A stretch of DNA of 64,000 bases, from sequence record NC_049849.1; one strand, given 5' to 3'. Positions 6,761 to 53,691 of this stretch are shown piece by piece. Under the pieces are notes generated by a model. The model was not told where the DNA came from. It did not search any database and saw nothing but the letters and a program-made list of their open reading frames with translations. A program made the position numbers and the translations under genes. Numbering within the stretch: position 1 is the first letter of the stretch; every line of letters starts with the position of its first letter.

Positions 6761-7222
6761 TCAGTCCAAAAAGACGTTAGGCTCGCCATCGTTGTACAGC
6801 ACGTCGCCAAGATCGTCTTCAGTCTCGCCGCCGTCATCATACAAAACGTTTTGCATTTCGTAGTTCTTGCTGGGAGACGTTTCGCCGTCGTTGATGGTGT
6901 TCTTAACTGCCGGCGTCGTTTCAGGATCGTAGTCACCGTCATTGATGCGTTGATCCAGCGTCAATGCGTGAAGCCGCGCAGAGCTATTAACTCTGAACGG
7001 CTCGGTCTTGTAATTCTGCGGCTGGTACGTCGTGCCTTGATAGAGCGACGGCGGACTGGCTTGCACGTCGTAACCCAAGCGCTCACTCAACATGCGGTAG
7101 AAGTCAGACTCAAGTTCTTCCTTGTCTACGCCGAGAGCATGGGCGAAAGCATGTACCTGCTCATCGCTGGGTTCCGGGTTGTGCTCGAGAAAGTTCTCGA
7201 TGATTTGGTCATAGCAGGCCAT
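6761..7222 (-). CDS. Acidic hypothetical protein, 153 aa, with an internal leader-like motif (RVNSSARLHA)
   Basis: AGGAG RBS upstream; D/E-rich sequence. Confidence 0.65.
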   Translation of the reverse strand: MACYDQIIENFLEHNPEPSDEQVHAFAHALGVDKEELESDFYRMLSERLGYDVQASPPSLYQGTTYQPQNYKTEPFRVNSSARLHALTLDQRINDGDYDPETTPAVKNTINDGETSPSKNYEMQNVLYDDGGETEDDLGDVLYNDGEPNVFLD

Positions 7223-7254: not shown

Positions 7255-7595
7255 TACGCTTTCGATCTGGCCCTGAACAAATGTGTATGGCGTTTGTCGT
7301 GACAAGACTTGCAGAGACCGACCAGATTGGTCAGAGTGTTGGTGCCGCCTTTCGATAGCGGAATGATGTGATGCGGCTCACTCATCTTGTTTGAGCAGCC
7401 CTGCACTTCGCAGTAACCGCCGCATCGTTTCTTCACCTGAGCATGCAAGTCCCACCAGGAGTTGTTCTTGGTGTAGCCGTTGACCGTTGCATAGGAAGAG
7501 TGTTGAATTCTAGCAGTACCGTTGGCACGACGCGTAGACTTCGCAGCCTTGAGCGTCGTGCGTCGGCCTGCAAGCTTTGACCAGGGGTTCGTCAT
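7254..7595 (-). CDS. HNH endonuclease, 113 aa
   Basis: CEVQGC...HHIIPLSKGGTNTLTNLVGLCKSCHDKRH is a zinc-binding HNH signature. Confidence 0.85.
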   Translation of the reverse strand: MTNPWSKLAGRRTTLKAAKSTRRANGTARIQHSSYATVNGYTKNNSWWDLHAQVKKRCGGYCEVQGCSNKMSEPHHIIPLSKGGTNTLTNLVGLCKSCHDKRHTHLFRARSKA

Positions 7596-8971
7596 TTGGT
7601 AGCAGGTTTGAGTTGTTCAATACCGCGCTGCTTGAACAGGATTTGCACGGAGTGATTGGGCTTGAACTTGTACTTCGGCAGCCAGCAGAGCAGCCCGAGC
7701 GTTGCCGTGAACATATTGCCTTGCGACGTGATGACCTCAGCGGCTGCACGTTGCTTCCACACCTTCAGGGAGAGAATCACGACCTCGCGGATCGTCCCAT
7801 CCTTCGAGTTGTACATGCCGCAGATGGTGCCGCGCCCCTCGTCCTTCGGGCTGAGCTTGTGGCTCTTCACGTAATCAGCGACCTTGCGCTGCTCAGGCGT
7901 CAAGTAGTCATCGTTCGAGTTCTTGTCGTACCGACTTGGGTCGAGACCGCACTTCACCATCCATGATTTCCAGACCGGACCGTGTCCAGCTTCCGGTTCA
8001 CTGTAGACCATAGAGATTTCAGACGTGGCTTGGTGGCACATTTCATGCACCAAGATTTCGAGAAAGATTTCCGGCTTGGCGTTGAACAGTCGAGGACTCA
8101 GTGCGAGATTACGACCAATGCGCTGCCAGTAGCCACGCAGTTTGAAGTGCGAGCCTTGATCCTTTAGCAGCGTGAAGTTCGGTTCATCCAGCTCGCCCTT
8201 GAACTTCGACTTGTTGAGCAGGTTCCACAAATACTTGATGGTCAGCAGCTTCGCTTGATTCGGACTGTTGGATCGAATGGAGTCCAGCTTATCCAACGCC
8301 GACTGCTGCAGCCCGTACTTGTTGAGCGACGGTGCGGTGTCATCAATCAGGTCTTTGTCTACGACCGGAATGTCTTGGTCTTCGGGATCGGCAACAGGAT
8401 TGCCCGAAGGCCCTAGCTTAACAGTCTTGGCCTCAGCGTAACCAGAAGCCGACTGATACATCGTGACCTTGCCATTCTCGACCTTGAGCTTTAGGCCCAC
8501 GTCTTCCGAGTAGTACTGACCGCCTTTCGGAACGAAGCCCCACTCTTTGATGAACTGAGTGGGATTGGTCAAGCGAAACTCGATAGCGCCGAGAGGGTAG
8601 GTGGTGTTTGAGAAAGTGGCCGTAGCGTAACCAGCGACCTCTTTCAGAATGTTGGTCCAGTCAGGTACGGTCTCGCCCATCAAGATCACGCGATCATCCA
8701 ATACCTGAATAGGATAGTGGTTGCCGTTGTGAACCCATATGGCTGGATTGCGAGACCACGGGCTGAAGTCTAGCTTCTTGAGTATGCGCGTGACTTCGTG
8801 AGGAAGCCACTGCGTGTATCCAAGCACTGCCAGGGTCTTCACCTGAACTGGGTCCATGACGGGCAGGCCGCCTAGCTTCAGACGCCGTTGCAGCGATGCC
8901 GCCGACTGCTGTAAGTTCTGATTGCTAGAAAAGGCCCGTGCAAAAATGGGACCGCAGAATGTACATTGCAT
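7592..8971 (-). CDS. SprT-like zinc metalloprotease domain protein (start could be the ATG at 8857)
   Basis: ILVHEMCHQA (HExxH) followed by GHGPVWKSWM; upstream WNLLNKSKFKGEL matches the SprT N-terminal pattern. Confidence 0.78.
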   Translation of the reverse strand: MQCTFCGPIFARAFSSNQNLQQSAASLQRRLKLGGLPVMDPVQVKTLAVLGYTQWLPHEVTRILKKLDFSPWSRNPAIWVHNGNHYPIQVLDDRVILMGETVPDWTNILKEVAGYATATFSNTTYPLGAIEFRLTNPTQFIKEWGFVPKGGQYYSEDVGLKLKVENGKVTMYQSASGYAEAKTVKLGPSGNPVADPEDQDIPVVDKDLIDDTAPSLNKYGLQQSALDKLDSIRSNSPNQAKLLTIKYLWNLLNKSKFKGELDEPNFTLLKDQGSHFKLRGYWQRIGRNLALSPRLFNAKPEIFLEILVHEMCHQATSEISMVYSEPEAGHGPVWKSWMVKCGLDPSRYDKNSNDDYLTPEQRKVADYVKSHKLSPKDEGRGTICGMYNSKDGTIREVVILSLKVWKQRAAAEVITSQGNMFTATLGLLCWLPKYKFKPNHSVQILFKQRGIEQLKPATK

Positions 8972-8974
8972 TAC

Positions 8975-10645
8975 TTACCCTTTGTTCTGTTGCGCGGTGT
9001 GCTCCGCCTTCGTGAGCTCCGCGAGGTCCCATTTCTTTTCGAGCTTGGTAACGTACCAGCTTGGGATAGTCTCTTTAATACCAGACTCCGGTACGTTGAC
9101 ATAGGACTTGTTGTGCGGTATGTAAACCAGCCAGGCACCGCCAGTGCCGTGACCAACAATCAAACCAATGCCCTCAGTGGTCATGTAGAATTTGCCGATG
9201 AGTGTCGGCGATTTCTTCTCTGCTTGCGCACCCGGTTCTTTCTCTAGCTCTTGGCGTCTGGACAGTGCTTTAAGGAAGTAGGAATGGAACTCGTGCTTCT
9301 TGCTGTAGGGCAGCGCATGTTCGACTTCTTTGCGATTGACTTTGTCCCCAAGCACTAGATATGAGACAACCTCTGGATGCTTCCAATCAGGATGCCAAGC
9401 CTTCATGTTGTCGCCGCCTGCCAGGTCTGTGACAATCAGCGGACCGTAGGTGGAGTTGAATGTCCTGGCGACTAGATCGAAACCATACGCTGGCTTCGGC
9501 CCGATGCTCGGCAGCTTACCGCCCTTTTTGAAGACGTTATCCCACGGCTTATTAGGTATGATTTCGCTTTCCGGTTTCTTCTGTGCATTGCTATGCGCCA
9601 TCTGCATGAAGGTTTCGTACTTGGTCATGTCGGACGCCGGCACCGCAGCCTTGAAGGCACCTAGATAGACTTGCATTTGCAGTGACTTGTAGCCAGTCTT
9701 CTTTGGAACATTCCACCCAGGCTGCCATACACGTACGAGGGAAGGCTCATCAATGCCGATGACCAGCAGTGGACCGAACTGCGAATTGAAAGCCTTGCCC
9801 AGCAACTCGGGTCCGAACTTGGGCTTATATACCGTATCCTTGAGCTTGCTGCCAGGACCCCAGTTGAAGTTCTGTGTGGTCGGCACTCCGGGCAGGCCTT
9901 TGCTTGGCTTGCCAGGCTCGAAAATCGTTTTCGCGTTCTTGTCCAGTATGGGATTGCGGATCACCGTGGTCTTAATCGACTCGTTGCCGGGAATGAATAC
10001 GATGAACTCGCGCTCATCCGTATAGTCATCCAGCTGCTTGTGAGCACGACCCCACATGAAAGCAGCAGAGCGATAGAATGTTGCGAACTTGGGGTCACCG
10101 CCTTCCTTGTGCGCGGCATCCAGCGCCACGAACATTTTGAATAGCCGATCAGTGATGATCTTAATCGACGCGTGGTCTGCAAGAACCAATCGACGGTCAG
10201 GCTTCCATGAAACGGTCAGCTTGTCATACGCTTGAAACTTTTTGAGAGCCACATCAGAGAACGATAGGATCGGACTGAACGTGTTTTTCTTATTCAGCTC
10301 CAGCGTACCGCCAACCGGAATCTGCTCGTCTTCTTTGTTGACCTTGGTGCTACGATACAGCAGCTTGGGGACCTTCGGCTTAGCCAGCACCTGCAAGTGA
10401 GCCATGGCGACCGCAATGGCATCAACCTTGTCATAAGTGCGGGCTTCAAGGGCAGCGCTGTGCAGACGTTCGCTTTTGTTCTGCATCATGAAGTCGCCGC
10501 TGAACCAACCAGTGACCAGCGTCGGCAGCTTGTGCGCCAGGAACTCCCGCTCATCAGCGCCAAGCTTCGAGTAGAAGGCCCACGTCTTCTTTACATCAGG
10601 CGTAGGCTTCAGCGCTAACAGTCTATAAGCTGCTTGGATTTCCAT
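8975..10645 (-). CDS. Putative ADP-ribosyltransferase (R-S-E class) with leader and C-terminal repeated beta modules, 556 aa
   Basis: LLYRST / PILSFSD / DEREFIVF follows the R, SxS, ExE order; N-terminus MEIQAAYRLLA. Confidence 0.6.
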   Translation of the reverse strand: MEIQAAYRLLALKPTPDVKKTWAFYSKLGADEREFLAHKLPTLVTGWFSGDFMMQNKSERLHSAALEARTYDKVDAIAVAMAHLQVLAKPKVPKLLYRSTKVNKEDEQIPVGGTLELNKKNTFSPILSFSDVALKKFQAYDKLTVSWKPDRRLVLADHASIKIITDRLFKMFVALDAAHKEGGDPKFATFYRSAAFMWGRAHKQLDDYTDEREFIVFIPGNESIKTTVIRNPILDKNAKTIFEPGKPSKGLPGVPTTQNFNWGPGSKLKDTVYKPKFGPELLGKAFNSQFGPLLVIGIDEPSLVRVWQPGWNVPKKTGYKSLQMQVYLGAFKAAVPASDMTKYETFMQMAHSNAQKKPESEIIPNKPWDNVFKKGGKLPSIGPKPAYGFDLVARTFNSTYGPLIVTDLAGGDNMKAWHPDWKHPEVVSYLVLGDKVNRKEVEHALPYSKKHEFHSYFLKALSRRQELEKEPGAQAEKKSPTLIGKFYMTTEGIGLIVGHGTGGAWLVYIPHNKSYVNVPESGIKETIPSWYVTKLEKKWDLAELTKAEHTAQQNKG

Positions 10646-10654
10646 GTCTAGTCC

Positions 10655-10996
10655 TTACTTCTTCGATTTGTAGCGCTGATCCTCTGGAACCTTCGACCAC
10701 ATCTTCTGCTGCTTCACAGCCTCAGCCTTCATTTCTCTGTAAATAGACTTCAAGTTGTTCGGCACAGCCTTATCAACTTTTTCTTCGTACAGCAAAATCC
10801 CCAGGTCAGCGAACTTGACGTAGCCCCAACCTGTTTGCCAAGTCGGGTTGAAGACGCCGGCGATCTTACGGTCAGCGTCGACCATGACGACCAACACCGG
10901 ACCTTCCTTACTGTCACGGTAGGTATTGGGTTCGGGCGTTGCGGCGGGTGCGCGCCTCGGAGCCGCCGCAAGGCGAGCGCGTGCTTGAATTTCCAT
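10655..10996 (-). CDS. Leader-bearing small protein; stand-alone copy of the beta module repeated in the 556-aa protein
   Basis: MEIQARARLAA; YRDSKEGPVLVV...VFNPTW resembles FNSQFGPLLVI...VWQPGW. Confidence 0.65.
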   Translation of the reverse strand: MEIQARARLAAAPRRAPAATPEPNTYRDSKEGPVLVVMVDADRKIAGVFNPTWQTGWGYVKFADLGILLYEEKVDKAVPNNLKSIYREMKAEAVKQQKMWSKVPEDQRYKSKK

Positions 10997-11005
10997 GTTT
11001 ATTCC

Positions 11006-12142
11006 TTAGTGAAATTTGTACTTCTTACCGCCTGGGCCCCCGGTCTTGGTGTTGCTCTTAGAGCCCCACTTGTAACTCGGCTTAGACTTAGCCGGACCGC
11101 CGCCTTTGTAACTCGTCTTCTTTTTGAAGCTAGGCGGCTGCATCCATTCGTCAGACTCGTCGTTGCCGCCGTCGAAGTCGAAGGGCTTATAGCCTTTCGG
11201 CAAGCCTTTCTTGAACACCTTGTACACCGGCATCTTCTCGAACTTGAGTCTATTCTCTTTGCTCAAGTCCTCCATGAAGTAGTCAGCCGATTCGTCGGTA
11301 CCCATAACGTTTTTAACGTCAGTAACAACGGTCTTCATTTGATTGGTCAAGACTTCGACCTTGGGGCCGACTTTGGTGATCACGACATTGCCGTACTTCG
11401 GCCAGTAGCGAACAGCGCCAATGTTCAAAGCGAACGGATTGCGAATTACCTTGACCGTCAAACTTTCGTTGCCCGGGATGAACACGATGAACTCGCGTTC
11501 CTTCTCGAAGTGTTCGATTTCGCTCAGCGCATCTTCCCATTCATCAGAAGCCTGACTGTAGAAGTTGATGTAAGGGTCGGAGTCATCTGACTCGCGGTCG
11601 TCGTGAGCGTGCATCAAGTCGTCAAACATATTCTTGAACATCGAACATATTTGAACCATCCAATGGAAGTCACCCAACACCAAACGCGGGTCTACCTTCC
11701 ACTCAATAGTCAAGTTATCCGACTCTTCAAACATCGTAGGCTTCTCGTCAGCAAACGACAGGATCGGACTGCGAGTCGTCTTGGCATTGAGTTCCAACGT
11801 GCCGCCGACAGGAGTGAGCATCTGCTCTTTGTTCACATGCGTGGCACGGTACAGAACCTTCGGGACTTTGAACGGAAAGGCTTGCTTGATGTGTCCAAGC
11901 GCGACCGCGATGGCATCAACCTTGTGATACTTCTTGGCAGTCAAATGCGAAGTCAAGCGTTGCGTCTTATTCTGCTTTGTGAACGAACCGCGGAACCATT
12001 GCGCAAGCAACGGCGGCAGTTCGAGAGCAAGGAAGCTGCGCTCCTTCGGGCCAAGCTTCGAGTAGAACGCCCAAGCCTTTTTGCTGCTTGAGGGCGGCTT
12101 CAATGCCTCAAGCCGAGTGGCTGCTTGAATTTCGTAGGTCAT
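11006..12142 (-). CDS. Putative ADP-ribosyltransferase paralogue 2, 378 aa
   Basis: MTYEIQAATRLEA; VLYRAT / PILSFAD / EKEREFIVFIPGNES; clearly aligns with 8975..10645. Confidence 0.6.
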   Translation of the reverse strand: MTYEIQAATRLEALKPPSSSKKAWAFYSKLGPKERSFLALELPPLLAQWFRGSFTKQNKTQRLTSHLTAKKYHKVDAIAVALGHIKQAFPFKVPKVLYRATHVNKEQMLTPVGGTLELNAKTTRSPILSFADEKPTMFEESDNLTIEWKVDPRLVLGDFHWMVQICSMFKNMFDDLMHAHDDRESDDSDPYINFYSQASDEWEDALSEIEHFEKEREFIVFIPGNESLTVKVIRNPFALNIGAVRYWPKYGNVVITKVGPKVEVLTNQMKTVVTDVKNVMGTDESADYFMEDLSKENRLKFEKMPVYKVFKKGLPKGYKPFDFDGGNDESDEWMQPPSFKKKTSYKGGGPAKSKPSYKWGSKSNTKTGGPGGKKYKFH

Positions 12143-12143
12143 A

Positions 12144-12908
12144 TTATTTGCTCTTGTACGCTTTGGGTTTTGGCTTCTTCTTTTCCAGGTTACGGTTCAG
12201 CAGCACGGTGCACGCCAGTCCCTCGTTACCCGGAACCCACACGATGTATTCGCTTTCAGCCCTGTATTCTTTCATGGTCTGGTACAGCCGAGTCCACTCT
12301 TTCAAGCCCGCTGCATACTCCTTCTTCAGCTGCGGCGTTAACTTATCAGCCGGAGTATTCACTAGCAATGATCTGAGCATCTTGGCAGTAGACTCGGCGA
12401 ACATAAGAAGGTAACGCGGAGTCGACAGGACCAAACGCTGGTCCGTTTTCCATTCGAGGTCCAAAGTACTGTGGCCTCGAAAGTTAGGCTGAACCTTGCT
12501 AGAGAACGAGAGGATCGGAGTCAACGTCGATTTCAAATCCAGCGTTACCGTATCACCTACCGGAGTCTTCTGCTGCTCTTTGTTGATGCCAGTAACGCGA
12601 TACAGCTTGGCCGGAGCTTTAACGGGAAAGACCTGCTTGATGTGAGCAAGCGCCACAGCAATCGCGTCGACCTTGTGATACGAACGAGCTTCAATCGAAG
12701 ACTCCAGGCGTTCGCTCTTTCGATTCTTGCCTTGGTGCATGAACGACCCACCGAACCAGCCTTCAAGCAACTTCGGCAATTCAACGCGAAAGAATTTGCG
12801 CTCTGCCGTCCCAAGCTTTTTGTAGAACAGGGCGAATACTGTCTTGGGCGAAATGTCGTTAGCGGTTAATGCTTCAAGCCGCGTGGCTGATAGGACTTCG
12901 TATGTCAT
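12144..12908 (-). CDS. Putative ADP-ribosyltransferase paralogue 3, 254 aa
   Basis: MTYEVLSATRLEA; KLYRVT / PILSFSS / RAESEYIVWVPGNE; KVDAIAVA is shared by all three paralogues. Confidence 0.6.
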   Translation of the reverse strand: MTYEVLSATRLEALTANDISPKTVFALFYKKLGTAERKFFRVELPKLLEGWFGGSFMHQGKNRKSERLESSIEARSYHKVDAIAVALAHIKQVFPVKAPAKLYRVTGINKEQQKTPVGDTVTLDLKSTLTPILSFSSKVQPNFRGHSTLDLEWKTDQRLVLSTPRYLLMFAESTAKMLRSLLVNTPADKLTPQLKKEYAAGLKEWTRLYQTMKEYRAESEYIVWVPGNEGLACTVLLNRNLEKKKPKPKAYKSK

Positions 12909-13453
12909 GAGTACTGCCCTTCGTTCATTTGGATATCGCCTTGCGGAGTCGGCTGAACTCCATCAATGGTCATGACTCCCGTGTCCACTGTGACGTTTCC
13001 CAGGGTGTCAGGAGATTGACCGTTGACCGACAGGACCGGATTGGTCGACGGTGGCACAACAGGGCGGTCAAGAGAGTCGCCGAGTGCTTGGTGAACAAAG
13101 AGCTTCACCGGCACAGTCGAGACATTTTTGACAATGAAATTGGTAGTCAGCTCATCCAACACCAGCAGGTTCTTGACGTAAATCGTGACCTGCGTGTCAT
13201 CCAGTTTCCGCGTGTACTCAACAGAGATAGGACCATCGCAGCGAACGATCAGCATGTTGGAACTGGCGCCAGTCCATACTTGATTGGGTGCGAGTTCGAA
13301 GATCGAATTTTGAATCGAGGTCTCGCTCAGATAGGCTTGCGAGTAGTCACCCACACGCTGGCGAATCTGATTGTAGCCTTGCTGCACACCTACGCTTACC
13401 ACCAGAGAGTTCCTGGGCTTTTTAGCCGGGGTGATTGAAACTTCGTAATCCAT
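12905..13453 (-). CDS. Probable virion/fibre-associated protein, 182 aa (start MDYEVS)
   Basis: VLSVNGQSPDTLGNVTV repeats typical of fibre proteins; C-terminal NEGQYS resembles the DxGTY/F ends of other fibre genes here. Confidence 0.6.
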   Translation of the reverse strand: MDYEVSITPAKKPRNSLVVSVGVQQGYNQIRQRVGDYSQAYLSETSIQNSIFELAPNQVWTGASSNMLIVRCDGPISVEYTRKLDDTQVTIYVKNLLVLDELTTNFIVKNVSTVPVKLFVHQALGDSLDRPVVPPSTNPVLSVNGQSPDTLGNVTVDTGVMTIDGVQPTPQGDIQMNEGQYS

Positions 13454-13454
13454 T

Positions 13455-14582
13455 TTATTTCTCCAGTGCCACGATATAGTCGGTGAGCTTTTCTTTGTAG
13501 CGCACGAGCTTTGCCAGTTCGGTCGACAGCGACTCGGCGCCAGGACCTTCACCAAATTCTTTCAGCTTCGACTGCACTGCCGTAATCTGATTGTCGATAG
13601 AGGACAGCGCAATGTAGGCTCGGTCGAGTTCGGGGTCACCCGTTTCTTCCGGCTCTTCCTGATCGTTGTCGTCAAACTCTAGCTGCAGGTTCGACGGGTC
13701 TTGACCAAGGTTGATGATATCCTCGGCTGCATCTTTCATGTAGCCCATGAACTTCTGCATCTTGATTTCGTCACGCTGCCGTTGCGCTTCACGGTCTTGC
13801 TTCTCTTGTTCAGCCCGAGCTTTCCGATTCTCCGCCGCCTTATCTTTGGCGTCTTGTATCATCTGCGCGTCGTCTTCTTCAGTAGAGAGCGACTCAGGCT
13901 CATCGCCGTCCTCGTCAGGGATAATCTCGTCGTTGCCTTCGTCGGGTCCGTTCTCGTTATCGTCAGCAGTGCCTGGTCTGAACTTCGACTCGGGATGCTC
14001 GGCCAGCCACTGCTTTTGTTGCGACGAGTCCCACGATTTAAAATCCTGTTCAGAGATAGCGCGAATGGCTGTAGCTTGCAGTCGAGTCGATGCGAAGATT
14101 TCCATCATCAGCTCTTGCTGCGACGGCAGAGTGATATCTTCCAAGCGCTCTAGCGTTTTCGGATCAATGGTTTCAGGAATGCCCTCGAACGATTGCGGGT
14201 GGCCGTTCTTGTCCACCATATCGCCGCCGGCATCATCACCAGCTTCGATTCCAAAGTCATCAGCTTGTTCAGCGTTCGGCACATCAGTACCAGTGAAGGC
14301 CGACGACGCTTTGATGAACGCAGCAGCTTCGGTAATGGAAGCTTTCAGCTTTGCGTCGTCGATGCACTTACTGCAAATTTTGGAGCCACCACAGCGGGAG
14401 CGCTCGCCGTTAGCATTTGCAAATACATGACCGTGCCCAGCGCCCATAGCGGCACGTCCATCTGAAGTCTGTGGTACTCCGTCGAACATGGCGGGGTATT
14501 TTGTTTTGAGCATTGCATCAAATTCCTCTTGGGTTTCACCACGGCGCTCTAGTAGGCGCTGCATTCGTTGGTCTATATCCAT
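13455..14582 (-). CDS. Acidic hypothetical protein, 375 aa (start MDIDQR), with GHGH..RCGG..C..C motif and internal leader MEIFASTRLQA
   Basis: The ATG at 14582 abuts the stop of the upstream gene at 14584. Confidence 0.65.
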   Translation of the reverse strand: MDIDQRMQRLLERRGETQEEFDAMLKTKYPAMFDGVPQTSDGRAAMGAGHGHVFANANGERSRCGGSKICSKCIDDAKLKASITEAAAFIKASSAFTGTDVPNAEQADDFGIEAGDDAGGDMVDKNGHPQSFEGIPETIDPKTLERLEDITLPSQQELMMEIFASTRLQATAIRAISEQDFKSWDSSQQKQWLAEHPESKFRPGTADDNENGPDEGNDEIIPDEDGDEPESLSTEEDDAQMIQDAKDKAAENRKARAEQEKQDREAQRQRDEIKMQKFMGYMKDAAEDIINLGQDPSNLQLEFDDNDQEEPEETGDPELDRAYIALSSIDNQITAVQSKLKEFGEGPGAESLSTELAKLVRYKEKLTDYIVALEK

Positions 14583-14583
14583 A

Positions 14584-14844
14584 CTAGCCCGGATTTCCCA
14601 CAGTGTAGAAGTAAACCTTGTCAGGCGTGCTAGGCATCGTAACGCACCAGCACGTCTCGGAGTCTTGCTCAACGATTGCGCCTTCAGCTTCGAGTGCCGT
14701 GATAGCGCGCTCTACATCATCCGGGTCGTTGTCGATAGCCAAGCCCTGCGAGCTGACTTCGGCGGCGAGGCCTGCGGCGTTCAGTATGTCGTGTACCTCG
14801 TTGACTGCTGAGGCTTTCAGTCTTGCACGGGCTTGGATTCTCAT
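14584..14844 (-). CDS. Leader-bearing small protein, 86 aa
   Basis: MRIQARARLKA; tiles exactly with neighbours. Confidence 0.7.
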   Translation of the reverse strand: MRIQARARLKASAVNEVHDILNAAGLAAEVSSQGLAIDNDPDDVERAITALEAEGAIVEQDSETCWCVTMPSTPDKVYFYTVGNPG

Positions 14845-15123
14845 TTACGTCACCTTGTATGCGATAGAGAAGTCGTGACCGTCTTTGCCTTTGCTGATGT
14901 ACTGGACTTCGATGCCATTGCGCTTCAGCATTTCGAAGTAGCGGAAATGAATCGTGCCATCAACAAAGAAGAAGCCCTCGTTGATTTTTGCATCGGGGCT
15001 GTCTTTCATTTTCTTGTGAAAGGCCGGAGGGATCGAAACGTTCGGCATCAAGTGCAGGTCTTCGATCACTTCGGAGATAGGACGCGCTGCAGCAGTCAGC
15101 CGTGCCTTTGCTTGGATGTGCAT
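14845..15123 (-). CDS. Leader-bearing small protein, 92 aa
   Basis: MHIQAKARLTA; TAATG coupling with the upstream gene. Confidence 0.7.
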   Translation of the reverse strand: MHIQAKARLTAAARPISEVIEDLHLMPNVSIPPAFHKKMKDSPDAKINEGFFFVDGTIHFRYFEMLKRNGIEVQYISKGKDGHDFSIAYKVT

Positions 15124-15749
15124 TACTTCTTCCTGTTAAACGGATTGATCGACATGACGACCGGCACGCGCCACTCAGGGCCCCACGGCTTGGTGTCCGA
15201 GTACCACTTCAGCTGGTCACGGTCCCAGTAGTTCCACGCCTTCCAGCCCAGCTTATACGTGCCGTACTTGCCTTGGTAGTTGATGTTCCACAAACCATTG
15301 GTAGCGGTAGCGATGAACAGCTGATGCTTACCATCAAACGGCTGCCAGGTTTGGATCGTCCACTTCTTCTGATCCATCACTTCGCCAAGCGGGTAGTAGG
15401 AGAAGCCGTAACCAGAGTTGCGATTCAGCCAACGCCACTGGTAGTATTTGCGACGCCAGAAGCTCGGCAGATTGTCTTTGCTGTATGTGCCCTTCGGTAC
15501 GAAGTAGCCGCCAATCCAACCAGTGTCTAGCGACGCATCAAACGTCTCTACCCACTTGAGCCAGTTCGGCAGGCGCTGTTCCAATCCTTGCCATTCAGGC
15601 TTGGCTTGCGAGTACATCCACTCCTCGGGCTTGACCGGACGTGCGACAAACACGACCCACCAGTTGAGAAACAGAACGCAGAAAAGGTTGAAGACCAAAT
15701 CAACCAGACCCAACGCCAACCACTTCAAAGTTTGCACTACATACTTCAT
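15123..15749 (-). CDS. Trp-rich protein with N-terminal hydrophobic segment, 208 aa
   Basis: LALGLVDLVFNLFCVLFLNWWVVFV is a likely transmembrane helix; WRWLNRNSGYGF; AGGAG RBS. Confidence 0.7.
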   Translation of the reverse strand: MKYVVQTLKWLALGLVDLVFNLFCVLFLNWWVVFVARPVKPEEWMYSQAKPEWQGLEQRLPNWLKWVETFDASLDTGWIGGYFVPKGTYSKDNLPSFWRRKYYQWRWLNRNSGYGFSYYPLGEVMDQKKWTIQTWQPFDGKHQLFIATATNGLWNINYQGKYGTYKLGWKAWNYWDRDQLKWYSDTKPWGPEWRVPVVMSINPFNRKK

Positions 15750-15759
15750 TGACTAACTC

Positions 15760-16005
15760 CTATTTGAAAAGACGCTCTGCCTTACGCAGCAGATGCGACG
15801 CCATCTTGATGTTGCCTTGCTTCAACCAACGCTCGACCTCTTCAGCGATATCCAACATATCCCGCTCTTCGGATTTCACCAAGTCGCGAATCAGTCTCGG
15901 CATACGACCTAAGGCATCAGCATCACCCTTCAGTGCTTGCTGGAACAGAATGGAAGGCCCGTTGAAGGCCTCTAGCCTTGACGCTGCTCTTATTTGAAAC
16001 CCCAT
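15760..16005 (-). CDS. Leader-bearing small protein, 81 aa
   Basis: MGFQIRAASRLEA. Confidence 0.7.
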   Translation of the reverse strand: MGFQIRAASRLEAFNGPSILFQQALKGDADALGRMPRLIRDLVKSEERDMLDIAEEVERWLKQGNIKMASHLLRKAERLFK

Positions 16006-16008
16006 AGC

Positions 16009-16206
16009 TCAAACTCCAAAACGAGTAATGCGCTCCGCCAGTGTATCAGCATAGCGATCCATGAAGAAGGCCTGAGTCTCTAGCAACTCTTGATCGGCCA
16101 AAGGTAAATCCTTGAACAGCTGAGTTTCAAAGAATGCCTTGAGCTTGGTCAAGCGTTCCATGAGTTCCGAGTGTTCACTTACTACGCGTTGCTGATGTGG
16201 TGCCAT
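16009..16206 (-). CDS. Small coiled-coil phage protein (crAss001_48-like), 65 aa
   Basis: HQQRVVSEHSELMERLTKLKAFF...QELLETQAFFMDRYADTLAERI pattern, recognised from memory. Confidence 0.6.
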   Translation of the reverse strand: MAPHQQRVVSEHSELMERLTKLKAFFETQLFKDLPLADQELLETQAFFMDRYADTLAERITRFGV

Positions 16207-16218
16207 TATTTTTCCTAG

Positions 16219-17775
16219 TTATAGTGGGCCTGCGCAAGCACCCCAGTTGTAGCTGGCGGGTGCATAGCGTCCCCACACAGAAGCTGGGCTGATAGTGATA
16301 CCAACAGCACCAGTTGCCCCTCTTGCCACGCCGGCTCCACCCGACCCGCCGCCAGAACCATCACCGCCAGTGTTGCCACGGATAATTAGGTTTTGCTTGA
16401 ACGGCTTCAGCTCGTTGTCCAACCGCGATTGAATCTTGGACGCAGCGCTGTCGAGGTACTGAGTACGATCCACGTTCAGGCTAATGGCTTGGCCTTGGAA
16501 GTCGAATGCCTTCTCACCTTCGGCGAGATACTGCGCTTCGATTGCAAACAGCTCGGCCAACATCAACCAGTACTCGCGAATGCCACCCAGTGCATTGGTC
16601 ATGGTGAAGTTCGTAGAAACGCCCATCCAACCATTGAACGCATCAGCCGCACGTCGCAACCAAGTCATGATTGTGGTCGGTGGGAACAACAGGTCAGGCG
16701 CTCCGTAGAGAGTCGTACGCGCCTTGTTGATCTTTGCCTTCACATCGTCAATCGCATTGGCTAGCGATGCGTTGATAACGAATAGATCGGTGCGTTCAGT
16801 GTAGACGCGTGCCGAATACTTCGATTGCCAGAACTTCCACACCACCGAGTACGGATAGACCGCAGCCGGCAGGTTGTCGGTGACCAGCACGCCTGCATAA
16901 TACCAACCAGACGCGACCTTGATAGGAGCATCGGTAGCAGGCTGCGACGTATCCGAAATCATCGTCAGCGGAACCAGCTGCTGATTCTGCCTAAACAGTT
17001 GGATGCCTACTCGGTCATACATCTGGTCAGTGACGAGCTCCAGCGTTGCAGGATCGCCCTGCATTTCGACTTGCGGTTGCACACCAATGGGCACGGTAAC
17101 GAGACCGACCACGGTGATGGCTTCGCCTTGAAATTCACGCACGGTCGAGCCATCAGGCTGCCGACGTTGAATGGTCCAACGCAGTTGATACTTCTGGTTC
17201 TCAATCGTAGGCGGAATGTCCGACGGTACAACGATGACGGCACGCGCCAGTACGTTGTTAGAGAAGCCGTTGACCTCTACGCGATATTCAAAAGCATTGC
17301 CTGCAGCGTAGACCGTACCATCCTCGGCCAACAGCTCATACAGAACGAAGCCGCCAGAGGGGTCGATATCAACTGGGTACGAGAACACGCACGTACCGAT
17401 GACCGAGTCGCCGGCCTGTACCGTATCGACCAAGTCCTTAAATGCGTCAGGGCTCTGCGTCGAATACGGAACCAGTTCGCCGGATTGCGTATTGCAGGTC
17501 ACGGCTAGCAACGCTCCGAACTTGCGGAGGTTGGTGGTGACCACAACATCAATGCCGTACGAGATACCGGGGCTGCCGCCAGTCATGCGGACTTCGATGG
17601 TGACGCCATCAATGCCGAGATACGTAGCATTAAGTGGGGTGGTGGTGACTGGAGTCGGGGCACCCAGTTCAACCAAAGTGATCGTTTCGCCTGGTTGAAG
17701 CAGTGACCCCAACTGCGCTTGCACTACAGTGTCGCTGTTAGTGTCTTTGTAGTAGACGAAAGTTGTTGATGCCAT
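16219..17775 (-). CDS. Virion structural protein, possibly head-tail adaptor/neck, 518 aa
   Basis: Long ORF with beta-rich N-terminal part and helical C-terminal part (EKAFDFQGQAISLNVDRTQYL); function inferred from context. Confidence 0.5.
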   Translation of the reverse strand: MASTTFVYYKDTNSDTVVQAQLGSLLQPGETITLVELGAPTPVTTTPLNATYLGIDGVTIEVRMTGGSPGISYGIDVVVTTNLRKFGALLAVTCNTQSGELVPYSTQSPDAFKDLVDTVQAGDSVIGTCVFSYPVDIDPSGGFVLYELLAEDGTVYAAGNAFEYRVEVNGFSNNVLARAVIVVPSDIPPTIENQKYQLRWTIQRRQPDGSTVREFQGEAITVVGLVTVPIGVQPQVEMQGDPATLELVTDQMYDRVGIQLFRQNQQLVPLTMISDTSQPATDAPIKVASGWYYAGVLVTDNLPAAVYPYSVVWKFWQSKYSARVYTERTDLFVINASLANAIDDVKAKINKARTTLYGAPDLLFPPTTIMTWLRRAADAFNGWMGVSTNFTMTNALGGIREYWLMLAELFAIEAQYLAEGEKAFDFQGQAISLNVDRTQYLDSAASKIQSRLDNELKPFKQNLIIRGNTGGDGSGGGSGGAGVARGATGAVGITISPASVWGRYAPASYNWGACAGPL

Positions 17776-18501
17776 TTATCCTACCGCCACAATGTCTAGG
17801 AATCCCCTGCGGTCTACGTTCATAGAGAAGCGTTCGCCGCTCGGTAGTTGAGATATCATGACCAAGTCGGTGCCGTGCTTCACGACTTGCGAGGGCTTCT
17901 TGGTCAAGAACTGTACGCCGAGTTTGCCAAGCTCAACCAGGAAGGTCAAGGCCGACACATCGGTAGAGAAGTGAATCATGTCCAACCCATCAGCTTGCTC
18001 GACCGAGATTTTACCCTTGGCCAAACGGTTAGCGGCTTTCATGATCGCAGTTTTCGGATCGGCTGCGGCGGTGACCCGCGCTTCCATGTCAGCACCGTTA
18101 GCGAGTTCATCAGCTACAGCGCCATCGGCCGAACCTTCAATGGTTTCATCTTCGACTTCGGAGACGACACCGGGAAACATGGATTCAATGACGAAGGCCA
18201 TCGACTTCCCACCATCGGTCTCCAGCTCATCGGAAGTCACGACCGAAGGGTCTTCTGAACTCGTGACTGCTTGGTACATTGCATCGACTGCGGATGCTTG
18301 GGTGATCGCGTAGGCTTTCACTTTATCTCGTCCTTTCAATGATTCAGCTTCGTCTTCACCGTCACGTTCAAATTCTGCATCGGTGAGTTCTTGCTGAAGT
18401 TCATTTGCGTACTCGGTGTCTCCAGTACGCTTGGCATCACGAATCTGATTCTTGAGGTCACGGATTCGCTTGTCCAATTCTTTCGAGCTATGAATACGCA
18501 C
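17776..18501 (-). CDS. Acidic hypothetical protein, 241 aa
   Basis: Tiles in the operon, with GGAG upstream. Confidence 0.65.
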   Translation of the reverse strand: MRIHSSKELDKRIRDLKNQIRDAKRTGDTEYANELQQELTDAEFERDGEDEAESLKGRDKVKAYAITQASAVDAMYQAVTSSEDPSVVTSDELETDGGKSMAFVIESMFPGVVSEVEDETIEGSADGAVADELANGADMEARVTAAADPKTAIMKAANRLAKGKISVEQADGLDMIHFSTDVSALTFLVELGKLGVQFLTKKPSQVVKHGTDLVMISQLPSGERFSMNVDRRGFLDIVAVG

Positions 18502-18817
18502 TTTTCGATTTCTCCTTTATGCCGGTATCGACGATTTCGATCTGCGCCATACCTGGAGCAATATCGAACACCTTTACCGTACCATGAGGGAACTGTGCTT
18601 CGTACCGGCGCTTGTCTTTCAGGTGTACGAACTTCGCCTTAGACATTTCCTTAACCAGTACGTCTGCACTCTTGTTAGCGGAGTACAAAAGCGTATGCCC
18701 CAGGCCGTAAGTGACCTGGGGTGTTATGTTGGACTTCAGCCCTAGCTCTTGCAAGAACTTTCGTCCGGCCGCTTTGTCGCTCACTGCATGAAGCCGGAGT
18801 GCGGCGAGGATTTGCAT
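18488..18817 (-). CDS. Leader-bearing small protein, 109 aa (start MQILAALRLHA)
   Basis: GGAG-TTAACA-ATG at 18817; leader motif. Confidence 0.7.
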   Translation of the reverse strand: MQILAALRLHAVSDKAAGRKFLQELGLKSNITPQVTYGLGHTLLYSANKSADVLVKEMSKAKFVHLKDKRRYEAQFPHGTVKVFDIAPGMAQIEIVDTGIKEKSKSAYS

Positions 18818-18819
18818 TG

Positions 18820-19056
18820 TTAACTCCAACGTTTAGCGTGGTTCTTCCAGCGCTCCAGCTCTTCGGGGTCGGGATTGTTGCGCCCGGCCGCACTGTTGCG
18901 CCAACCGTGGTACCACTCCTCGGCGTCGAACGAATTAGCCGGATAGGGGCAGTCATTACGCGCTGCACCGTTGTCACCATCGGCTTGACCTTTACGAAAC
19001 GCCGGTGTGATATCGCCCATCGAAGCTTGCAGTCTCACGGCAGCTTTGATTTGCAT
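18820..19056 (-). CDS. Leader-bearing ribosome modulation factor (Rmf/CrpP)-like protein, 78 aa
   Basis: MQIKAAVRLQA then AFRKGQADGDNGAARNDCPYPANSFDAEEWYHGWR, matching the RMF pattern G..AG..G.....CPY.......W..GW. Confidence 0.6.
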   Translation of the reverse strand: MQIKAAVRLQASMGDITPAFRKGQADGDNGAARNDCPYPANSFDAEEWYHGWRNSAAGRNNPDPEELERWKNHAKRWS

Positions 19057-19580
19057 TACTGCTCCTTTGCAACGACGCGGGCTTTAGGAGCCAGCACTTC
19101 GTAGATGTAACTCGTATTGTTGTAGCGATGCACCGACAGATTCAACTCTTTAGCCTGAGCGGCATCAATCGGCTTACCCGTGTAGTACCAGAGTATGACC
19201 TTTTCGATCTGCGGCAGCGTCACGTTCTTTGGTTTGCGTTTGATCTTGCCAGCCTTGTAGCAGCCGTCACGCTCTAGCACATCCATCAAAACGTTCAGCC
19301 AACTGGAGTGGCCTGCTGCTGATTTGCCAACAGGTTCCATGCGGTACACGTTGTCGCCGTACGGTGCAGAGTCTTTCGGATTCCGTGACAAGAAAATGCA
19401 CTTCATGCGAGAGACTCCGATGCCAAGCTGCGCACGAGCCCACTCGAAGACTTGCTCTACCACACCCATGCGTTGATTCGACGGCTTGGCAGTAATGACC
19501 TTACCGATCGGCAAGTCCGCAGTCGTTCCATGGTAGAGCGGCTGCGATGCTTGCAATCTCACGGCAGCTTGAATTTCCAT
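19056..19580 (-). CDS. Leader-bearing H-type ADP-ribosyltransferase-fold protein (Arr-like), 174 aa
   Basis: MEIQAAVRLQA; LYHGT, IFLSRNP...YGDNVYRMEP, C-terminal IYEVL. Confidence 0.6.
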   Translation of the reverse strand: MEIQAAVRLQASQPLYHGTTADLPIGKVITAKPSNQRMGVVEQVFEWARAQLGIGVSRMKCIFLSRNPKDSAPYGDNVYRMEPVGKSAAGHSSWLNVLMDVLERDGCYKAGKIKRKPKNVTLPQIEKVILWYYTGKPIDAAQAKELNLSVHRYNNTSYIYEVLAPKARVVAKEQ

Positions 19581-19584
19581 TTTG

Positions 19585-19827
19585 TTAGCCTTCAATAGCT
19601 TTGATGAGAGGCAGCAGTTCTTTCAACTTGGCTTGAACGATCTTGGTCAGCTTTTTCTTCGACGCGCTTTCCAGTGCCGAAGCTGCTGCATCCAGTTGGC
19701 GCTCAACATCAGCACCACGTTGGCGCAACAGTGCAGGAATGTTGCCAATGTCGCCAGTCTTGATAGCATCGGCAATCGCATTAGCTGCCACACCTGCTTG
19801 AAGTCTTGCCTGTGCTTGGATTTGCAT
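19585..19827 (-). CDS. Leader-bearing small helical protein, 80 aa
   Basis: MQIQAQARLQA, preceded by GAGGA RBS. Confidence 0.7.
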   Translation of the reverse strand: MQIQAQARLQAGVAANAIADAIKTGDIGNIPALLRQRGADVERQLDAAASALESASKKKLTKIVQAKLKELLPLIKAIEG

Positions 19828-19835
19828 TTCAGTCC

Positions 19836-20219
19836 TCACTTAACGTTCATGACTCGGAAGATGATGCGCACGTTGTCGCCGTCCGGTACCACGACCATGC
19901 GCGTAGTCCACGAAGGAGCATCCTTGTTAGAGAGCGCCTTGTTCCACGAAACATAGGCCTTAGCTTTCGGGCCTTGTGCAATCGGCGGGTCATACTTGGA
20001 CTTGTGCGCAAAGTCGAACTGGAATTTGCGGACCAGCTTCTTCACAGCCTCCTTCGCTTCTGCGGGACTAACCGTAGCAGAGTACGTAGCAGCGCTGCCG
20101 CCTACGCCGTGATCACCAACGAGGTCGAGGCCGGATACTTCTTTGAGCAGTGGAGCGACTTGGTAGAGCGCACGGCTGTTAGCTGTGACTCGAAGTCTTG
20201 CGCGTGCTTGGATTAGCAT
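19836..20219 (-). CDS. Leader-bearing protein, 127 aa
   Basis: MLIQARARLRV, preceded by GAGGA RBS. Confidence 0.7.
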   Translation of the reverse strand: MLIQARARLRVTANSRALYQVAPLLKEVSGLDLVGDHGVGGSAATYSATVSPAEAKEAVKKLVRKFQFDFAHKSKYDPPIAQGPKAKAYVSWNKALSNKDAPSWTTRMVVVPDGDNVRIIFRVMNVK

Positions 20220-20227
20220 TTCAGTCC

Positions 20228-20656
20228 TCACTTGATGCAAGAGGCAACGAACTTGTCGATACCGTCGCGCATGGTCCTGGATTTGAACTTGACGCGGGCA
20301 GCTTCCTTCTGCACTTGCTTGCCAACCGTGCCCAACATAGCAGCGTGTGCCTTTTTGAGGTCGACCGGAATGACCACGTCTTGATTGCCCATGTCGAAAC
20401 GAATACGCAGAAGGCCGCTCGAATCGAACTCGTCAATGACTTCAATCTTGCCACGACTGTTATCCGATTCTTCTTGCGAGAGCCACCACAAATACATGGG
20501 TTCGCCGTTAGCCGTGCGCTTCACCTGAGCCGTGATTCCGAAGGCAAAGGATATACGCGAAGTGACTGCGGCGATTAGTTTGGCAACCGGAGAGGGGCGT
20601 TTGGCAGGCACTCCGGCAGCCGTGAGATTAAGCCGTGCTGCTGCTTGAATAATCAT
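20228..20656 (-). CDS. Leader-bearing protein, 142 aa
   Basis: MIIQAAARLNL. Confidence 0.7.
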   Translation of the reverse strand: MIIQAAARLNLTAAGVPAKRPSPVAKLIAAVTSRISFAFGITAQVKRTANGEPMYLWWLSQEESDNSRGKIEVIDEFDSSGLLRIRFDMGNQDVVIPVDLKKAHAAMLGTVGKQVQKEAARVKFKSRTMRDGIDKFVASCIK

Positions 20657-20665
20657 TTCATTCCT

Positions 20666-21187
20666 TTAGAGGTCTAGTTGCATAACGGGTTTCATGGTCG
20701 TAGCCGAACTACAAATAGCGATGACTTCTTTCTGATCGCCGTAGTCTAAAACCTCTTGAAAGTTTCGAGCGCGAGAGTCTTCGATCTTGGCGGACTTCAA
20801 GTACTGCATGATTTTCTTTGCCCACTCAAAAGTGAAGACTTGTTTGAAGTTGTCCACTTGATACACTGTGCCATTCAGCTGACCAATGCTGTCACCTAAG
20901 AACTCCCACTCTTCTGGTTTGTTCAGCGTAGTGAACGAAGCTACTCTGCGCACATCGAGCTTCGTACGCTCCGATATCCAATAGTAGGGACCACGCACGG
21001 GTACGAAAGGAACTGCGTCTACAAGGGGCCGTAGATGCTTCACCACAAACTGAGGAGTCAGATACTTAGAGTGCACACTGGACGACTGAGCCACGTAAGA
21101 ATTAAGCCAGTCAACAGCATCCAATACTGCCTCATTAGAAGCATCAGTGCTGGCAGCGCGTAGACGCAACGCTGCTTGAATAATCAT
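20666..21187 (-). CDS. Leader-bearing protein, 173 aa, possibly a degenerate ART fold
   Basis: MIIQAALRLRA; VASFTT and GDQKEVIAI resemble the SxT and QxE motifs, but the R is missing (PYYW). Confidence 0.6.
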   Translation of the reverse strand: MIIQAALRLRAASTDASNEAVLDAVDWLNSYVAQSSSVHSKYLTPQFVVKHLRPLVDAVPFVPVRGPYYWISERTKLDVRRVASFTTLNKPEEWEFLGDSIGQLNGTVYQVDNFKQVFTFEWAKKIMQYLKSAKIEDSRARNFQEVLDYGDQKEVIAICSSATTMKPVMQLDL

Positions 21188-34099: not shown

Positions 34100-34387
34100 A
34101 TGTACAGCTTCTGCGTTCAATCCGTTCAGCGCTTACACGCGCAAGTTCAAGTACAAGCTCGCATCAAGGACGAAGACGAGTACGACTGGTTCCGCTATAC
34201 GGGCCCGGCTACTGAGTTGGACTTCCGTGGCAAGCCTGAAGCATTGAGCAAGGGTGCCGTGTTTGGTGTGCGCCCATCGTCCAATGGCAAACACATTCGA
34301 CTGGTCTTCAAGGACAAGCCGACTCGAGTGTTCACGCTGCCGATGGATCAAGCTCAACGAATCGCCAAGCACGTGAAAGCTGCTTGA
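34100..34387 (+). CDS. Small protein with a leader-like motif (VQSVQRLHA), 95 aa
   Basis: Begins 1 nt after the portal stop. Confidence 0.65.
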   Translation: MYSFCVQSVQRLHAQVQVQARIKDEDEYDWFRYTGPATELDFRGKPEALSKGAVFGVRPSSNGKHIRLVFKDKPTRVFTLPMDQAQRIAKHVKAA

Positions 34388-53005: not shown

Positions 53006-53133
53006 TGGTATTCCTCAATAGATTTTTGAGGAAGGGTACGCCTGAGTGAAGAAACACCCAGGCGGTTCGAGCTTTGTATTTTGGACTGGTCTTGTTGCCA
53101 GCCTCAGACTTTCATTGCGAACGTCTACTCGAC

Positions 53134-53346: not shown

Positions 53347-53691
53347 TTAGGTTCGATCCTGTTTAGGAAGCTCGCGACCGTATGCGCGATAGAGCGCTTC
53401 CTTTACGTGTTGATACTTCGCCTTCTCGTTGCGGTCCTGGTTCTTGCCAGACCGGTTAGTGAAGTACGATAGTTTGGAAATGGCTTGTTTGAATTCGGGG
53501 CACTTGGTCTTGAGTGTATTTACGATTTCCCCTACGCCTTTGGTGAACAGACCTTCCGGCAAGTCTTGTGCTGGATTGCGAGCTTTGCCTTCTTCCTTCT
53601 TTTCGGCATTGTCGATCCAGCGCTTAGGTGGCGGCTTGTTCTGGCGAGTAGGAAGCGCAGCACTCAAGCGCTGTGCAGCTAGGATTTTCAT
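53347..53691 (-). CDS. Leader-bearing DUF3175-like protein, 114 aa
   Basis: MKILAAQRLSA; DLPEGLFT...AISKLSYFTNRSGKN...KEALYRAYGR resembles DUF3175 (from memory). Confidence 0.65.
   Translation of the reverse strand: MKILAAQRLSAALPTRQNKPPPKRWIDNAEKKEEGKARNPAQDLPEGLFTKGVGEIVNTLKTKCPEFKQAISKLSYFTNRSGKNQDRNEKAKYQHVKEALYRAYGRELPKQDRT

Follow-up and report, generated by a model that had tools for sequence, protein, structure and literature searches.

The stretch of DNA analysed here (the window, 64,000 nucleotides) covers positions 124001-188000 of the genome of Achromobacter phage Motura (NC_049849.1, 221,431 bp), and holds a series of otherwise dissimilar late proteins that begin with the same 11-residue peptide, M-x-I-x-A-A-x-R-L-x-A. 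This tag is found at the N-terminus of 16 Motura proteins, 15 of them encoded in the window and one (gp197) outside it, and it recurs in other members of the jumbo myophage lineage of phiRSL1, BcepSauron and Motura. Judged by its sequence features and by analogy, the tag is probably a capsid-targeting leader of this lineage, comparable to the capsid-targeting sequence (CTS) of phage T4; in the best reading, it works like the T4 CTS but stands outside that family. The principle has a precedent in T4, although the sequence of the tag is different.

The preliminary description of this DNA, made from the sequence without database searches, had listed 15 N-termini, all of which are present on the minus strand where it placed them; the observation is confirmed as real and is broader than first reported. 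A position-specific scoring matrix built from the 15 leaders was run over the six frames of the whole 221-kb genome, a scan that the same description had proposed, and returned 17 sites of at least 16.7 bits, the next best site reaching 14.3 bits, against a chance expectation of 0.07 such sites per proteome (random peptides with the amino-acid composition of the phage). Leave-one-out scores are all at least 11.0. These 17 strong sites are the 15 reported leaders, an internal copy in gp172 and the N-terminus of gp197, and two weaker copies, internal in gp180 and N-terminal but degenerate in gp146, are supported by orthologues or by position. The late structural block contains all of the strong sites, the ~260 other genes none (Fisher p = 1.3e-11). 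An equal frequency in early or non-virion genes had been named beforehand as evidence against the proposal, which withstood this test, as early and non-structural genes do not contain the motif. Further Motura members with the phiRSL1 spacing, or with C-terminal copies, were searched for, and none was convincing.

The codons at the conserved positions of the leader vary: every one of the six Arg codons is used for Arg6, both CTN and TTG for Leu7, and each of the four Ala codons for the Ala positions. Because synonymous codons vary at conserved positions, selection acts at the level of the peptide and not of the DNA. A DNA repeat, a promoter or a translation signal was also considered and is ruled out, since synonymous codons are all used and the upstream DNA holds nothing beyond an ordinary AGGA Shine-Dalgarno sequence. 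The leader is Ala-rich, with a single Arg and polar linkers after it, and holds neither a hydrophobic h-region of at least 10 residues nor a twin-arginine motif; it is therefore not a Sec or Tat signal.

The consensus of 83 non-redundant N-terminal cases is M(-2) K(-1) I1 [E/Q]2 A3 A4 x5 R6 L7 x8 A9, followed by a small residue, and conservation extends to positions that were not used in collecting the set (K at -1, E/Q at 2, and A at 4). The information content collapses past position 10, and Ile is residue 3 in 67 of the 83, as expected for a short terminal linear motif. The AlphaFold2 model of gp174 has a predicted local distance difference test (pLDDT) score of 85 overall, with residues 1-16 below 50 and forming a short helix detached from the domain.

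The tag is conserved across the lineage. The nearest relatives of Motura by capsid protein are BcepSauron/BcepSaruman, BCSR5, and phiRSL1, at ~60% identity. Related N-terminal leaders are held by ORF120, 123, 124, 127, 133, and the NUDIX protein ORF109 in phiRSL1, and by gp077 and gp091 in BcepSauron, while internal or C-terminal copies are found in BcepSauron gp093, phiRSL1 ORF125, and phiRSL1 ORF117. Three IMG/VR contigs located via the connector protein are also tagged; L010 is a close relative of Motura, and L012 holds at least seven copies. Besides phiRSL1 and BcepSauron, the tag is present in L010-L012, L014, and L015, and in total in at least 14 metagenomic contigs. In five relatives, tagged genes come directly after the protease gene.

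A blind scan of IMG/VR with a strict DNA pattern for M-K-I-x-A-A-x-R-L-x-A recovered 17 stretches in 12 contigs, a single contig holding at most six strict matches; under a relaxed motif, one 190-kb contig holds ~16 tagged genes. All 12 contigs belong to the lineage, 11 of them by homologues of Motura structural or head-module proteins and the remaining one (L028) by cargo families. Where present, their capsid proteins are 59-60% identical to that of Motura, the proteases 46-58%, and the connectors ~50%, and the portal and the polyvalent helicase are also found. The same pattern gave 65 single matches in a control of 596 Gb of bacterial genomes, none of them clustered and none accompanied by lineage markers, so this yield looks like background. 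In the more distant PaBG, whose capsid protein is 37% identical, no such leaders were found in the head region, and tblastn detected no gp185-type protease.

Tagged loci turn over fast between close relatives. The interval between the orthologues of gp157 and gp165 holds seven tagged genes in Motura versus two in L010, although the connectors of both phages are 84-85% identical, and a second locus holds three trio paralogues (gp174, gp175, and gp177) together with gp176 in Motura versus one trio orthologue in L010. A literature search that included reviews on jumbo phages yielded no description of such a tag.

The proteins behind the leader are diverse. After masking of the leader, BLASTP groups the 83 tagged proteins into 55 clusters, 41 of them singletons, and among the Motura proteins similarity is found only between gp174, gp175, and gp177, which agrees with the earlier statement that the sequences after the leader are unrelated apart from this trio. 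The cargo has a median length of 115 amino acids (aa; range 46-556), and 11 of the 16 N-terminally tagged Motura proteins have an isoelectric point of at least 9.2. Pfam domains recognised on the cargo include NUDIX (four proteins), DUF3175 (three), SprT-like with KMPT-N, saccharopine-dehydrogenase-like, LRV/HEAT repeats, RNase_T (exonuclease), GNAT, ribosome modulation factor (RMF), and an ATLF-type metallopeptidase-like domain. The tag occurs on enzymes whose homologues elsewhere lack it and is thus portable, as had been proposed.

Residues 17-54 of gp163 match the RMF family (PF04957) with 25.2 bits, below the cut-off of 27.9 (E = 1.7e-5); it would be uncommon for a phage to deliver a ribosome-hibernation factor. 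For gp162, which contains the string 'LYHGT', a relationship to phiRSL1 ORF117 or to Arr-like proteins was considered and rejected (BLASTP E = 1). In relatives, the leader is held by a 479-aa saccharopine-dehydrogenase/homospermidine-synthase-like enzyme (L022 361-1797 (+)) and by NUDIX hydrolases (among them phiRSL1 ORF109, L007 22252-22752); the homospermidine synthase and NUDIX genes of Motura itself are early and have no leader.

A zinc-ribbon-like N-terminus (GHGHV..CGG..C..C) is common to gp172 and BcepSauron gp093 (L008 18403-18777); next in both come an internal copy of the leader and an acidic tail, and gp093 holds a C-terminal copy in addition. A Met directly precedes the internal leader in gp172 and in its L010 orthologue, so an internal translation start giving a tagged C-terminal protein is possible.

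The trio gp174, gp175, and gp177 had been described as ADP-ribosyltransferases (ARTs). They form a true paralogue family with 29 members among 1.84 billion representative proteins, and in the alignment of these 29 sequences W51, R104, and E220 are invariant and S134 nearly so (gp174 numbering). The family holds the Arg, Ser-x-Ser, and Glu-x-Glu elements of the R-S-E motif of ARTs, and Glu-x-Glu is present in all three Motura paralogues. The ART fold, on the other hand, was not recovered: Pfam, PHROGs, and PDB sequence or profile searches gave no match for the trio, to an ART or to any other family, and the gp174 model found nothing in the PDB with Foldseek at E <= 1e-3. Foldseek against BFVD returned four hits, three of which are Motura's own paralogues and the fourth an unnamed protein with a TM score of 0.38. 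Since the fold and family searches all failed, it is the conserved R/S/E residues that back the ART label, and the trio may represent either a very divergent ART or a new fold. Of the 26 members outside Motura, ~15 start with the tag (e.g., MKIHAANRLLAS and MKLEAAQRLVTA), while in 11 the protein begins at the domain itself; in the contigs that hold them, the tag also marks neighbouring genes, for a NUDIX hydrolase and for small proteins, and one neighbour has the motif at its C-terminus.

A close parallel is found in phage T4. Its internal proteins, which are diverse and evolve fast, and Alt have nothing in common but an N-terminal CTS of ~10 residues; this CTS attaches them to the scaffolding core, is then cut off by gp21, and suffices to package foreign proteins (PMC3012670, PMC9026906). 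Like the CTS of IPI, IPII, IPIII, and Alt, the Motura tag is a peptide of about ten residues at the extreme N-terminus, and the only similarity among mostly small basic proteins and an enzyme; as in T4, the genes are late and their loci differ between close relatives, and the mostly basic Motura cargo resembles the internal proteins that sit in the packed DNA. Because these features match the T4 CTS point for point, a docking leader of this type is the best explanation of the tag. There are differences as well. There is no sequence similarity, and the Motura leader ends in R-L-x-A, without a Glu, versus (L/I)-x-E in T4. Its motif is absent from shell and scaffold proteins, gp185 has no recognisable homology to gp21 (Peptidase S77), and copies are also internal and C-terminal. 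The cargo genes number 16-18 in Motura versus four in T4 (IPI-III and Alt), and packaging is here predicted from sequence. Other jumbo phages (phiKZ, 201phi2-1, and SPN3US) likewise package many proteins whose N-terminal regions are removed by the prohead protease; however, those propeptides comprise 20-254 residues, are mutually dissimilar, and are defined by A/S/G-x-E only, whereas the Motura-type tag is a single short peptide, near letter-for-letter across cargo and genera.

In the proposed mechanism, the tagged proteins would be made late in infection together with the head proteins, and their flexible leader, with the consensus M-[K/E/Q]-[I/L]-[E/Q]-A-A-x-R-L-x-A-(small residue), would dock on a conserved part of the prohead, for which a core of the scaffold-like protein gp186, the inside of the capsid protein shell, and the portal are candidates. 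Small basic proteins make up most of the cargo, which also includes enzymes and the like (NUDIX, SprT-like peptidase, GNAT, exonuclease, an RMF-like protein, and the R/S/E-triad family); it would thus be enclosed and would exit together with the DNA in the following round of infection, and the leader might be removed by the head maturation protease after L-x-A. The earlier proposal is supported in part: its main idea of a T4-like tag with a different consensus stands as the best-supported explanation, in view of the late block, the lineage-wide occurrence, the portability, and the fast turnover, while docking, packaging, cleavage, and injection are inferred.

Several observations weigh against a CTS-like leader. 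Neither the capsid protein nor gp186 nor the protease has the motif, whereas T4 shares its cleavage motif among shell, core, and internal proteins, and the protease label of gp185 finds no support in Pfam, PDB, or Foldseek. About a third of the cargo is acidic. The internal or C-terminal copies (gp172, gp180, BcepSauron gp093, L010, and L015) are not predicted by a strictly N-terminal tag, and some tagged genes adjoin tail genes (gp197, BcepSauron gp077, and the unannotated open reading frame (ORF) 53353). Finally, the PaBG paper states in general terms only that virion proteins are processed, and neither it nor the Matilda paper mentions a tag; the searches in the Matilda preprint were fully tryptic.

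The enzyme proposed for removal of the leader is gp185, placed by the preliminary description at the window start as a prohead protease. This label is backed by a match to PHROG 18299 'head maturation protease' (E = 6e-81), but no protease fold was identified, with no hit in Pfam or in PDB sequence or profile searches, and nothing in Foldseek for a model with pLDDT 84. The motif is also missing from 120 homologues of the protease, and around the portal it occurs only as a degenerate copy in the gene that follows. Since the core head proteins lack the motif, the specificity of the protease is uncalibrated, and cleavage near R-L-x-A can only be inferred. Cleavage after L-x-A by the head maturation protease may nevertheless occur: conservation ends abruptly after A9 and the small residue, and internal copies lie in acidic scaffold-like proteins (gp172, gp180, phiRSL1 ORF125, and BcepSauron gp093). 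The sites of assemblin-type proteases of herpesviruses, distant relatives of the phage prohead proteases, follow the similar pattern (V/L/I)-x-A↓S. One protease orthologue, in L011 (17424-18263 (+)), has a leader-like start (MKIYSSSRLKTV), and L011 is the sole such contig; that the protease itself is tagged was examined on this account and ruled out, with no convincing case among the 120 homologues.

These same features could be taken to mean that the motif is nothing but a recognition or cleavage site of the maturation protease, a zymogen-style propeptide junction without a targeting role, with the cargo entering the head by other means. T4 core proteins and Alt carry such sites, and the motif also occurs at C-termini. 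This account is nonetheless quite unlikely, given that the capsid protein, the scaffold-like gp186, and the protease lack the motif, that a conserved element of nine residues is far longer than the known prohead-protease motifs of ~three residues, and that a cleavage site would not need to sit strictly at residues 3-11, as the motif does in 67 of 83 cases. Cleavage as such is also the more speculative part of the main reading: against it stand the missing motif in the capsid protein, gp186, and the protease homologues, the shortness of the known protease motifs, and the C-terminal copies, which make better sense as docking peptides. A further comparison is offered by the cargo-loading peptides of encapsulins, which are short, terminal (at either end), and anchor enzymes of unrelated kinds on the inside of an HK97-fold shell. 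The Motura-type tag shares the N- or C-terminal placement, and it could be a self-sufficient, position-independent cargo-loading peptide that binds a conserved surface of the HK97-fold shell or the portal directly, in the manner of an encapsulin in a DNA phage. Its consensus is different, however, its shell receptor is hypothetical, and encapsulins hold neither a protease nor DNA; we consider this a minority possibility, though not a negligible one. If true, the lineage as a whole would possess dozens of families of injected effectors, mostly without known fold or function, that could be listed from sequence alone, including a possible new ART-like fold, an injected ribosome-hibernation factor, and injected NUDIX enzymes, and the tag could be reused for loading chosen proteins into a jumbo capsid.

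Alternatively, the cargo could end up in the tail or the ejection machinery, be it the lumen of the tube, the baseplate, or the neck, as with the packing signals of extracellular contractile injection systems (eCIS). The gene of gp197 lies after the tube gene, that of BcepSauron gp077 between sheath and tube, the DUF3175 ORF beside tail-fibre genes, and the main block flanks the head-tail connector. Most tagged genes, however, cluster with those of the connector, the protease, the scaffold-like protein, and the capsid, and the conserved ones come after the protease and portal genes. The lumen of a myophage tube is filled by the tape measure protein, so that ~16 cargo species would not fit, and the N-terminal signals common to the unrelated payloads of eCIS (PVC/AFP) comprise ~50 poorly conserved residues that target the tube lumen, unlike the 11 highly conserved residues of the Motura tag, whose genes are linked to head genes. 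The chances of tail loading thus seem slim. A similarly low probability is assigned to a role in the infected cell and not in the virion: the tag might be recognised by a phage chaperone or unfoldase, might signal degradation or timing, or might bring proteins to an assembly site. Such a role would fit the GroES- and DnaJ-like chaperones encoded by the phage, as well as the saccharopine-dehydrogenase/homospermidine-synthase-like enzyme and the NUDIX, which could act late in the cell, and it profits from the fact that the placement of tagged proteins in virions is deduced indirectly; yet the tag is found only in structural operons and in none of the ~260 other genes, shows no Sec or Tat features, and marks small basic cargo in hypervariable loci that match known internal proteins. 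A shared N-terminus without any function of its own, due to common descent or to recombination of cassettes at conserved 5' ends of genes, would account for the trio, whose members are true paralogues, and the internal-protein loci of T-even phages do recombine at conserved leader-coding DNA. This reading is, however, effectively refuted by the codon analysis, which reveals no conservation at the DNA level, and it is extremely improbable also because the folds and Pfam families of the cargo are unrelated, the motif occurs at C-termini as well, and the tag was kept while the capsid proteins of the lineage diverged to 60% identity.

The leader also improves the annotation: in Motura it points to a gene that was missed and to three other start codons, and in phiRSL1 to the start of ORF133. 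The RefSeq starts of gp164 (18829), gp161 (19839), and gp160 (20240) are TTG or GTG codons upstream of the leader ATGs (18817, 19827, and 20219), and the annotated start of ORF133 (L007 41328-41828) likewise lies upstream of the ATG of a canonical leader. All four leader ATGs are preceded by a GAGGA/AGGA Shine-Dalgarno sequence, which in gp161 overlaps the annotated GTG. The annotated starts of gp160, gp161, and gp164 are thus probably wrong, the ATG starts being more likely. The missed gene lies opposite gp127 and gp126, which RefSeq calls on the plus strand (53074-53682 (+)) between minus-strand neighbours. Its product matches DUF3175 (PF11373) with 28.4 bits against a cut-off of 27 and has two other tagged DUF3175 homologues (best E = 1.8e-14), with tagged homologues in the related 190-kb contig; the plus-strand calls are probably wrong.

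The tagged block, whose 12-kb stretch matches the Motura genome at 100% identity, lies on the minus strand within the late structural block (Table 1). In the order of transcription, gp156/157 are followed by the tagged gp158-164, gp165, the connector gp166, gp167-173, gp174-177, the SprT-like gp178, the HNH protein gp179, gp180/181, the polyvalent helicase gp182, gp183, gp184, the 'head maturation protease' gp185, the acidic scaffold-like gp186, gp187, and the major head protein gp188. Several of these proteins have informative counterparts in relatives. The L010 orthologue of gp170 keeps I, A, R, L, and A and differs at the x positions; the gp164 family is leader-bearing in L010 and shows N-terminal similarity in L015, L019, and L028; and gp169 is kept in L010 with 72% identity. 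The internal site of gp180 is also present in the orthologues from L010 and phiRSL1 (ORF125), the homologue of gp178 in contig L017 begins with MKLEAAHRLVA, and a gene with a canonical leader occupies the position of gp146, directly after the portal gene, in L025. For gp162, a single homologue was found among 5.8 billion proteins.

Table 1. Tagged genes and neighbouring features of phage Motura (window positions unless stated otherwise)
Feature	Position (strand)	Length	Leader or copy	Remarks
gp185, C-terminal 174 residues	1..522 (-)			annotated head maturation protease, PHROG 18299; candidate processing enzyme
gp182	1477-6063 (-)	1528 aa		helicase-containing; beside tagged block
gp180	6761..7222 (-)	153 aa	FRVNSSARLHA, internal, 6965-6991	leader-like copy
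gp178	7592..8971 (-)		none in Motura	SprT-like metallopeptidase
gp177	8975..10645 (-)	556 aa	MEIQAAYRLLA	trio domain, long C-terminal extension
gp176	10655..10996 (-)	113 aa	MEIQARARLAA	Ala/Pro-rich linker after leader; orphan, basic
gp175	11006..12142 (-)	378 aa	MTYEIQAATRLEA	trio domain
gp174	12144..12908 (-)	254 aa	MTYEVLSATRLEA	trio domain
gp172	13455..14582 (-)	375 aa	MMEIFASTRLQA, internal, 14073-14099	acidic; copy also in L010 orthologue
gp171	14584..14844 (-)	86 aa	MRIQARARLKA	
gp170	14845..15123 (-)	92 aa	MHIQAKARLTA	
gp169	15123-15749 (-)		none	predicted membrane protein, hydrophobic N-terminal segment; inside tagged block
gp168	15760..16005 (-)	81 aa	MGFQIRAASRLEA	
gp166	16219..17775 (-)		none	head-tail connector, PHROG 17327; mid tagged-gene block; marker used to find relatives
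gp164	18488..18817 (-)	109 aa from ATG 18817	MQILAALRLHA	
gp163	18820..19056 (-)	78 aa	MQIKAAVRLQA	RMF-like domain
gp162	19056..19580 (-)	174 aa	MEIQAAVRLQA	orphan
gp161	19585..19827 (-)	80 aa from ATG 19827	MQIQAQARLQA	
gp160	19836..20219 (-)	127 aa from ATG 20219	MLIQARARLRV	
gp159	20228..20656 (-)	142 aa	MIIQAAARLNL	
gp158	20666..21187 (-)	173 aa	MIIQAALRLRA	
gp146	34100..34387 (+)		MYSFCVQSVQRLHA, degenerate, N-terminal	directly 3' of portal gene
ORF absent from RefSeq	53353..53691 (-)	112 aa	MKILAAQRLSA	DUF3175
gp197	genome 113334, outside window		MAMRIQAQARLNA	just downstream of tail tube gene

Polyvalent phage proteins are said to be injected with the DNA (Iyer et al.; PMC7824862). Their domains overlap with those found here (SprT-like peptidase, helicase, and a possible ART), and the polyvalent helicase gp182 adjoins the tagged block; however, polyvalent proteins fuse many domains in one chain, whereas the Motura system comprises separate small genes, each with its own tag. 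In every member of the lineage gp182 is encoded next to head genes (36-43% identity) and recalls these injected proteins, and its phiRSL1 orthologue, ORF129, has a faintly leader-like start (MANPTMVRADATRLRP), unlike gp182 of Motura. Two genes upstream of the head protease gene, with gp184 in between, lies the leaderless gp183 (927-1454 (-)), annotated as an 'RNA ligase' and matching the anti-CBASS phosphodiesterase family Acb1 (PF23474, E = 2.4e-12). The product of gp186 (L003 47077-48705 (-), outside the window) is annotated as an 'ATPase' (PHROG 20988), yet has no P-loop; with 21% Asp+Glu, a conserved central domain, and a gene located between those of the protease and the capsid protein, it looks like a scaffolding protein.

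If the tag is a capsid-targeting leader, the rule M-x-[IL]-x-A-A-x-R-L-x-A at residues 1-11 would list the packaged or injected proteins of a whole jumbo-phage lineage that infects Ralstonia, Burkholderia, Achromobacter, and many uncultured hosts, a list that now needs virion proteomics phage by phage. It would also be a second independent case of the T4 CTS principle, with a motif that is much more conserved and not shared with shell proteins, and would help to separate docking from cleavage, which are intertwined in T4, besides providing a short tag for loading proteins into large capsids. The cargo consists mostly of orphans in fast-turnover loci, where anti-defence and host-takeover factors are expected, and the NUDIX, the SprT-like peptidase, the GNAT, the exonuclease, the RMF-like protein, and the R/S/E-triad family are testable candidates.

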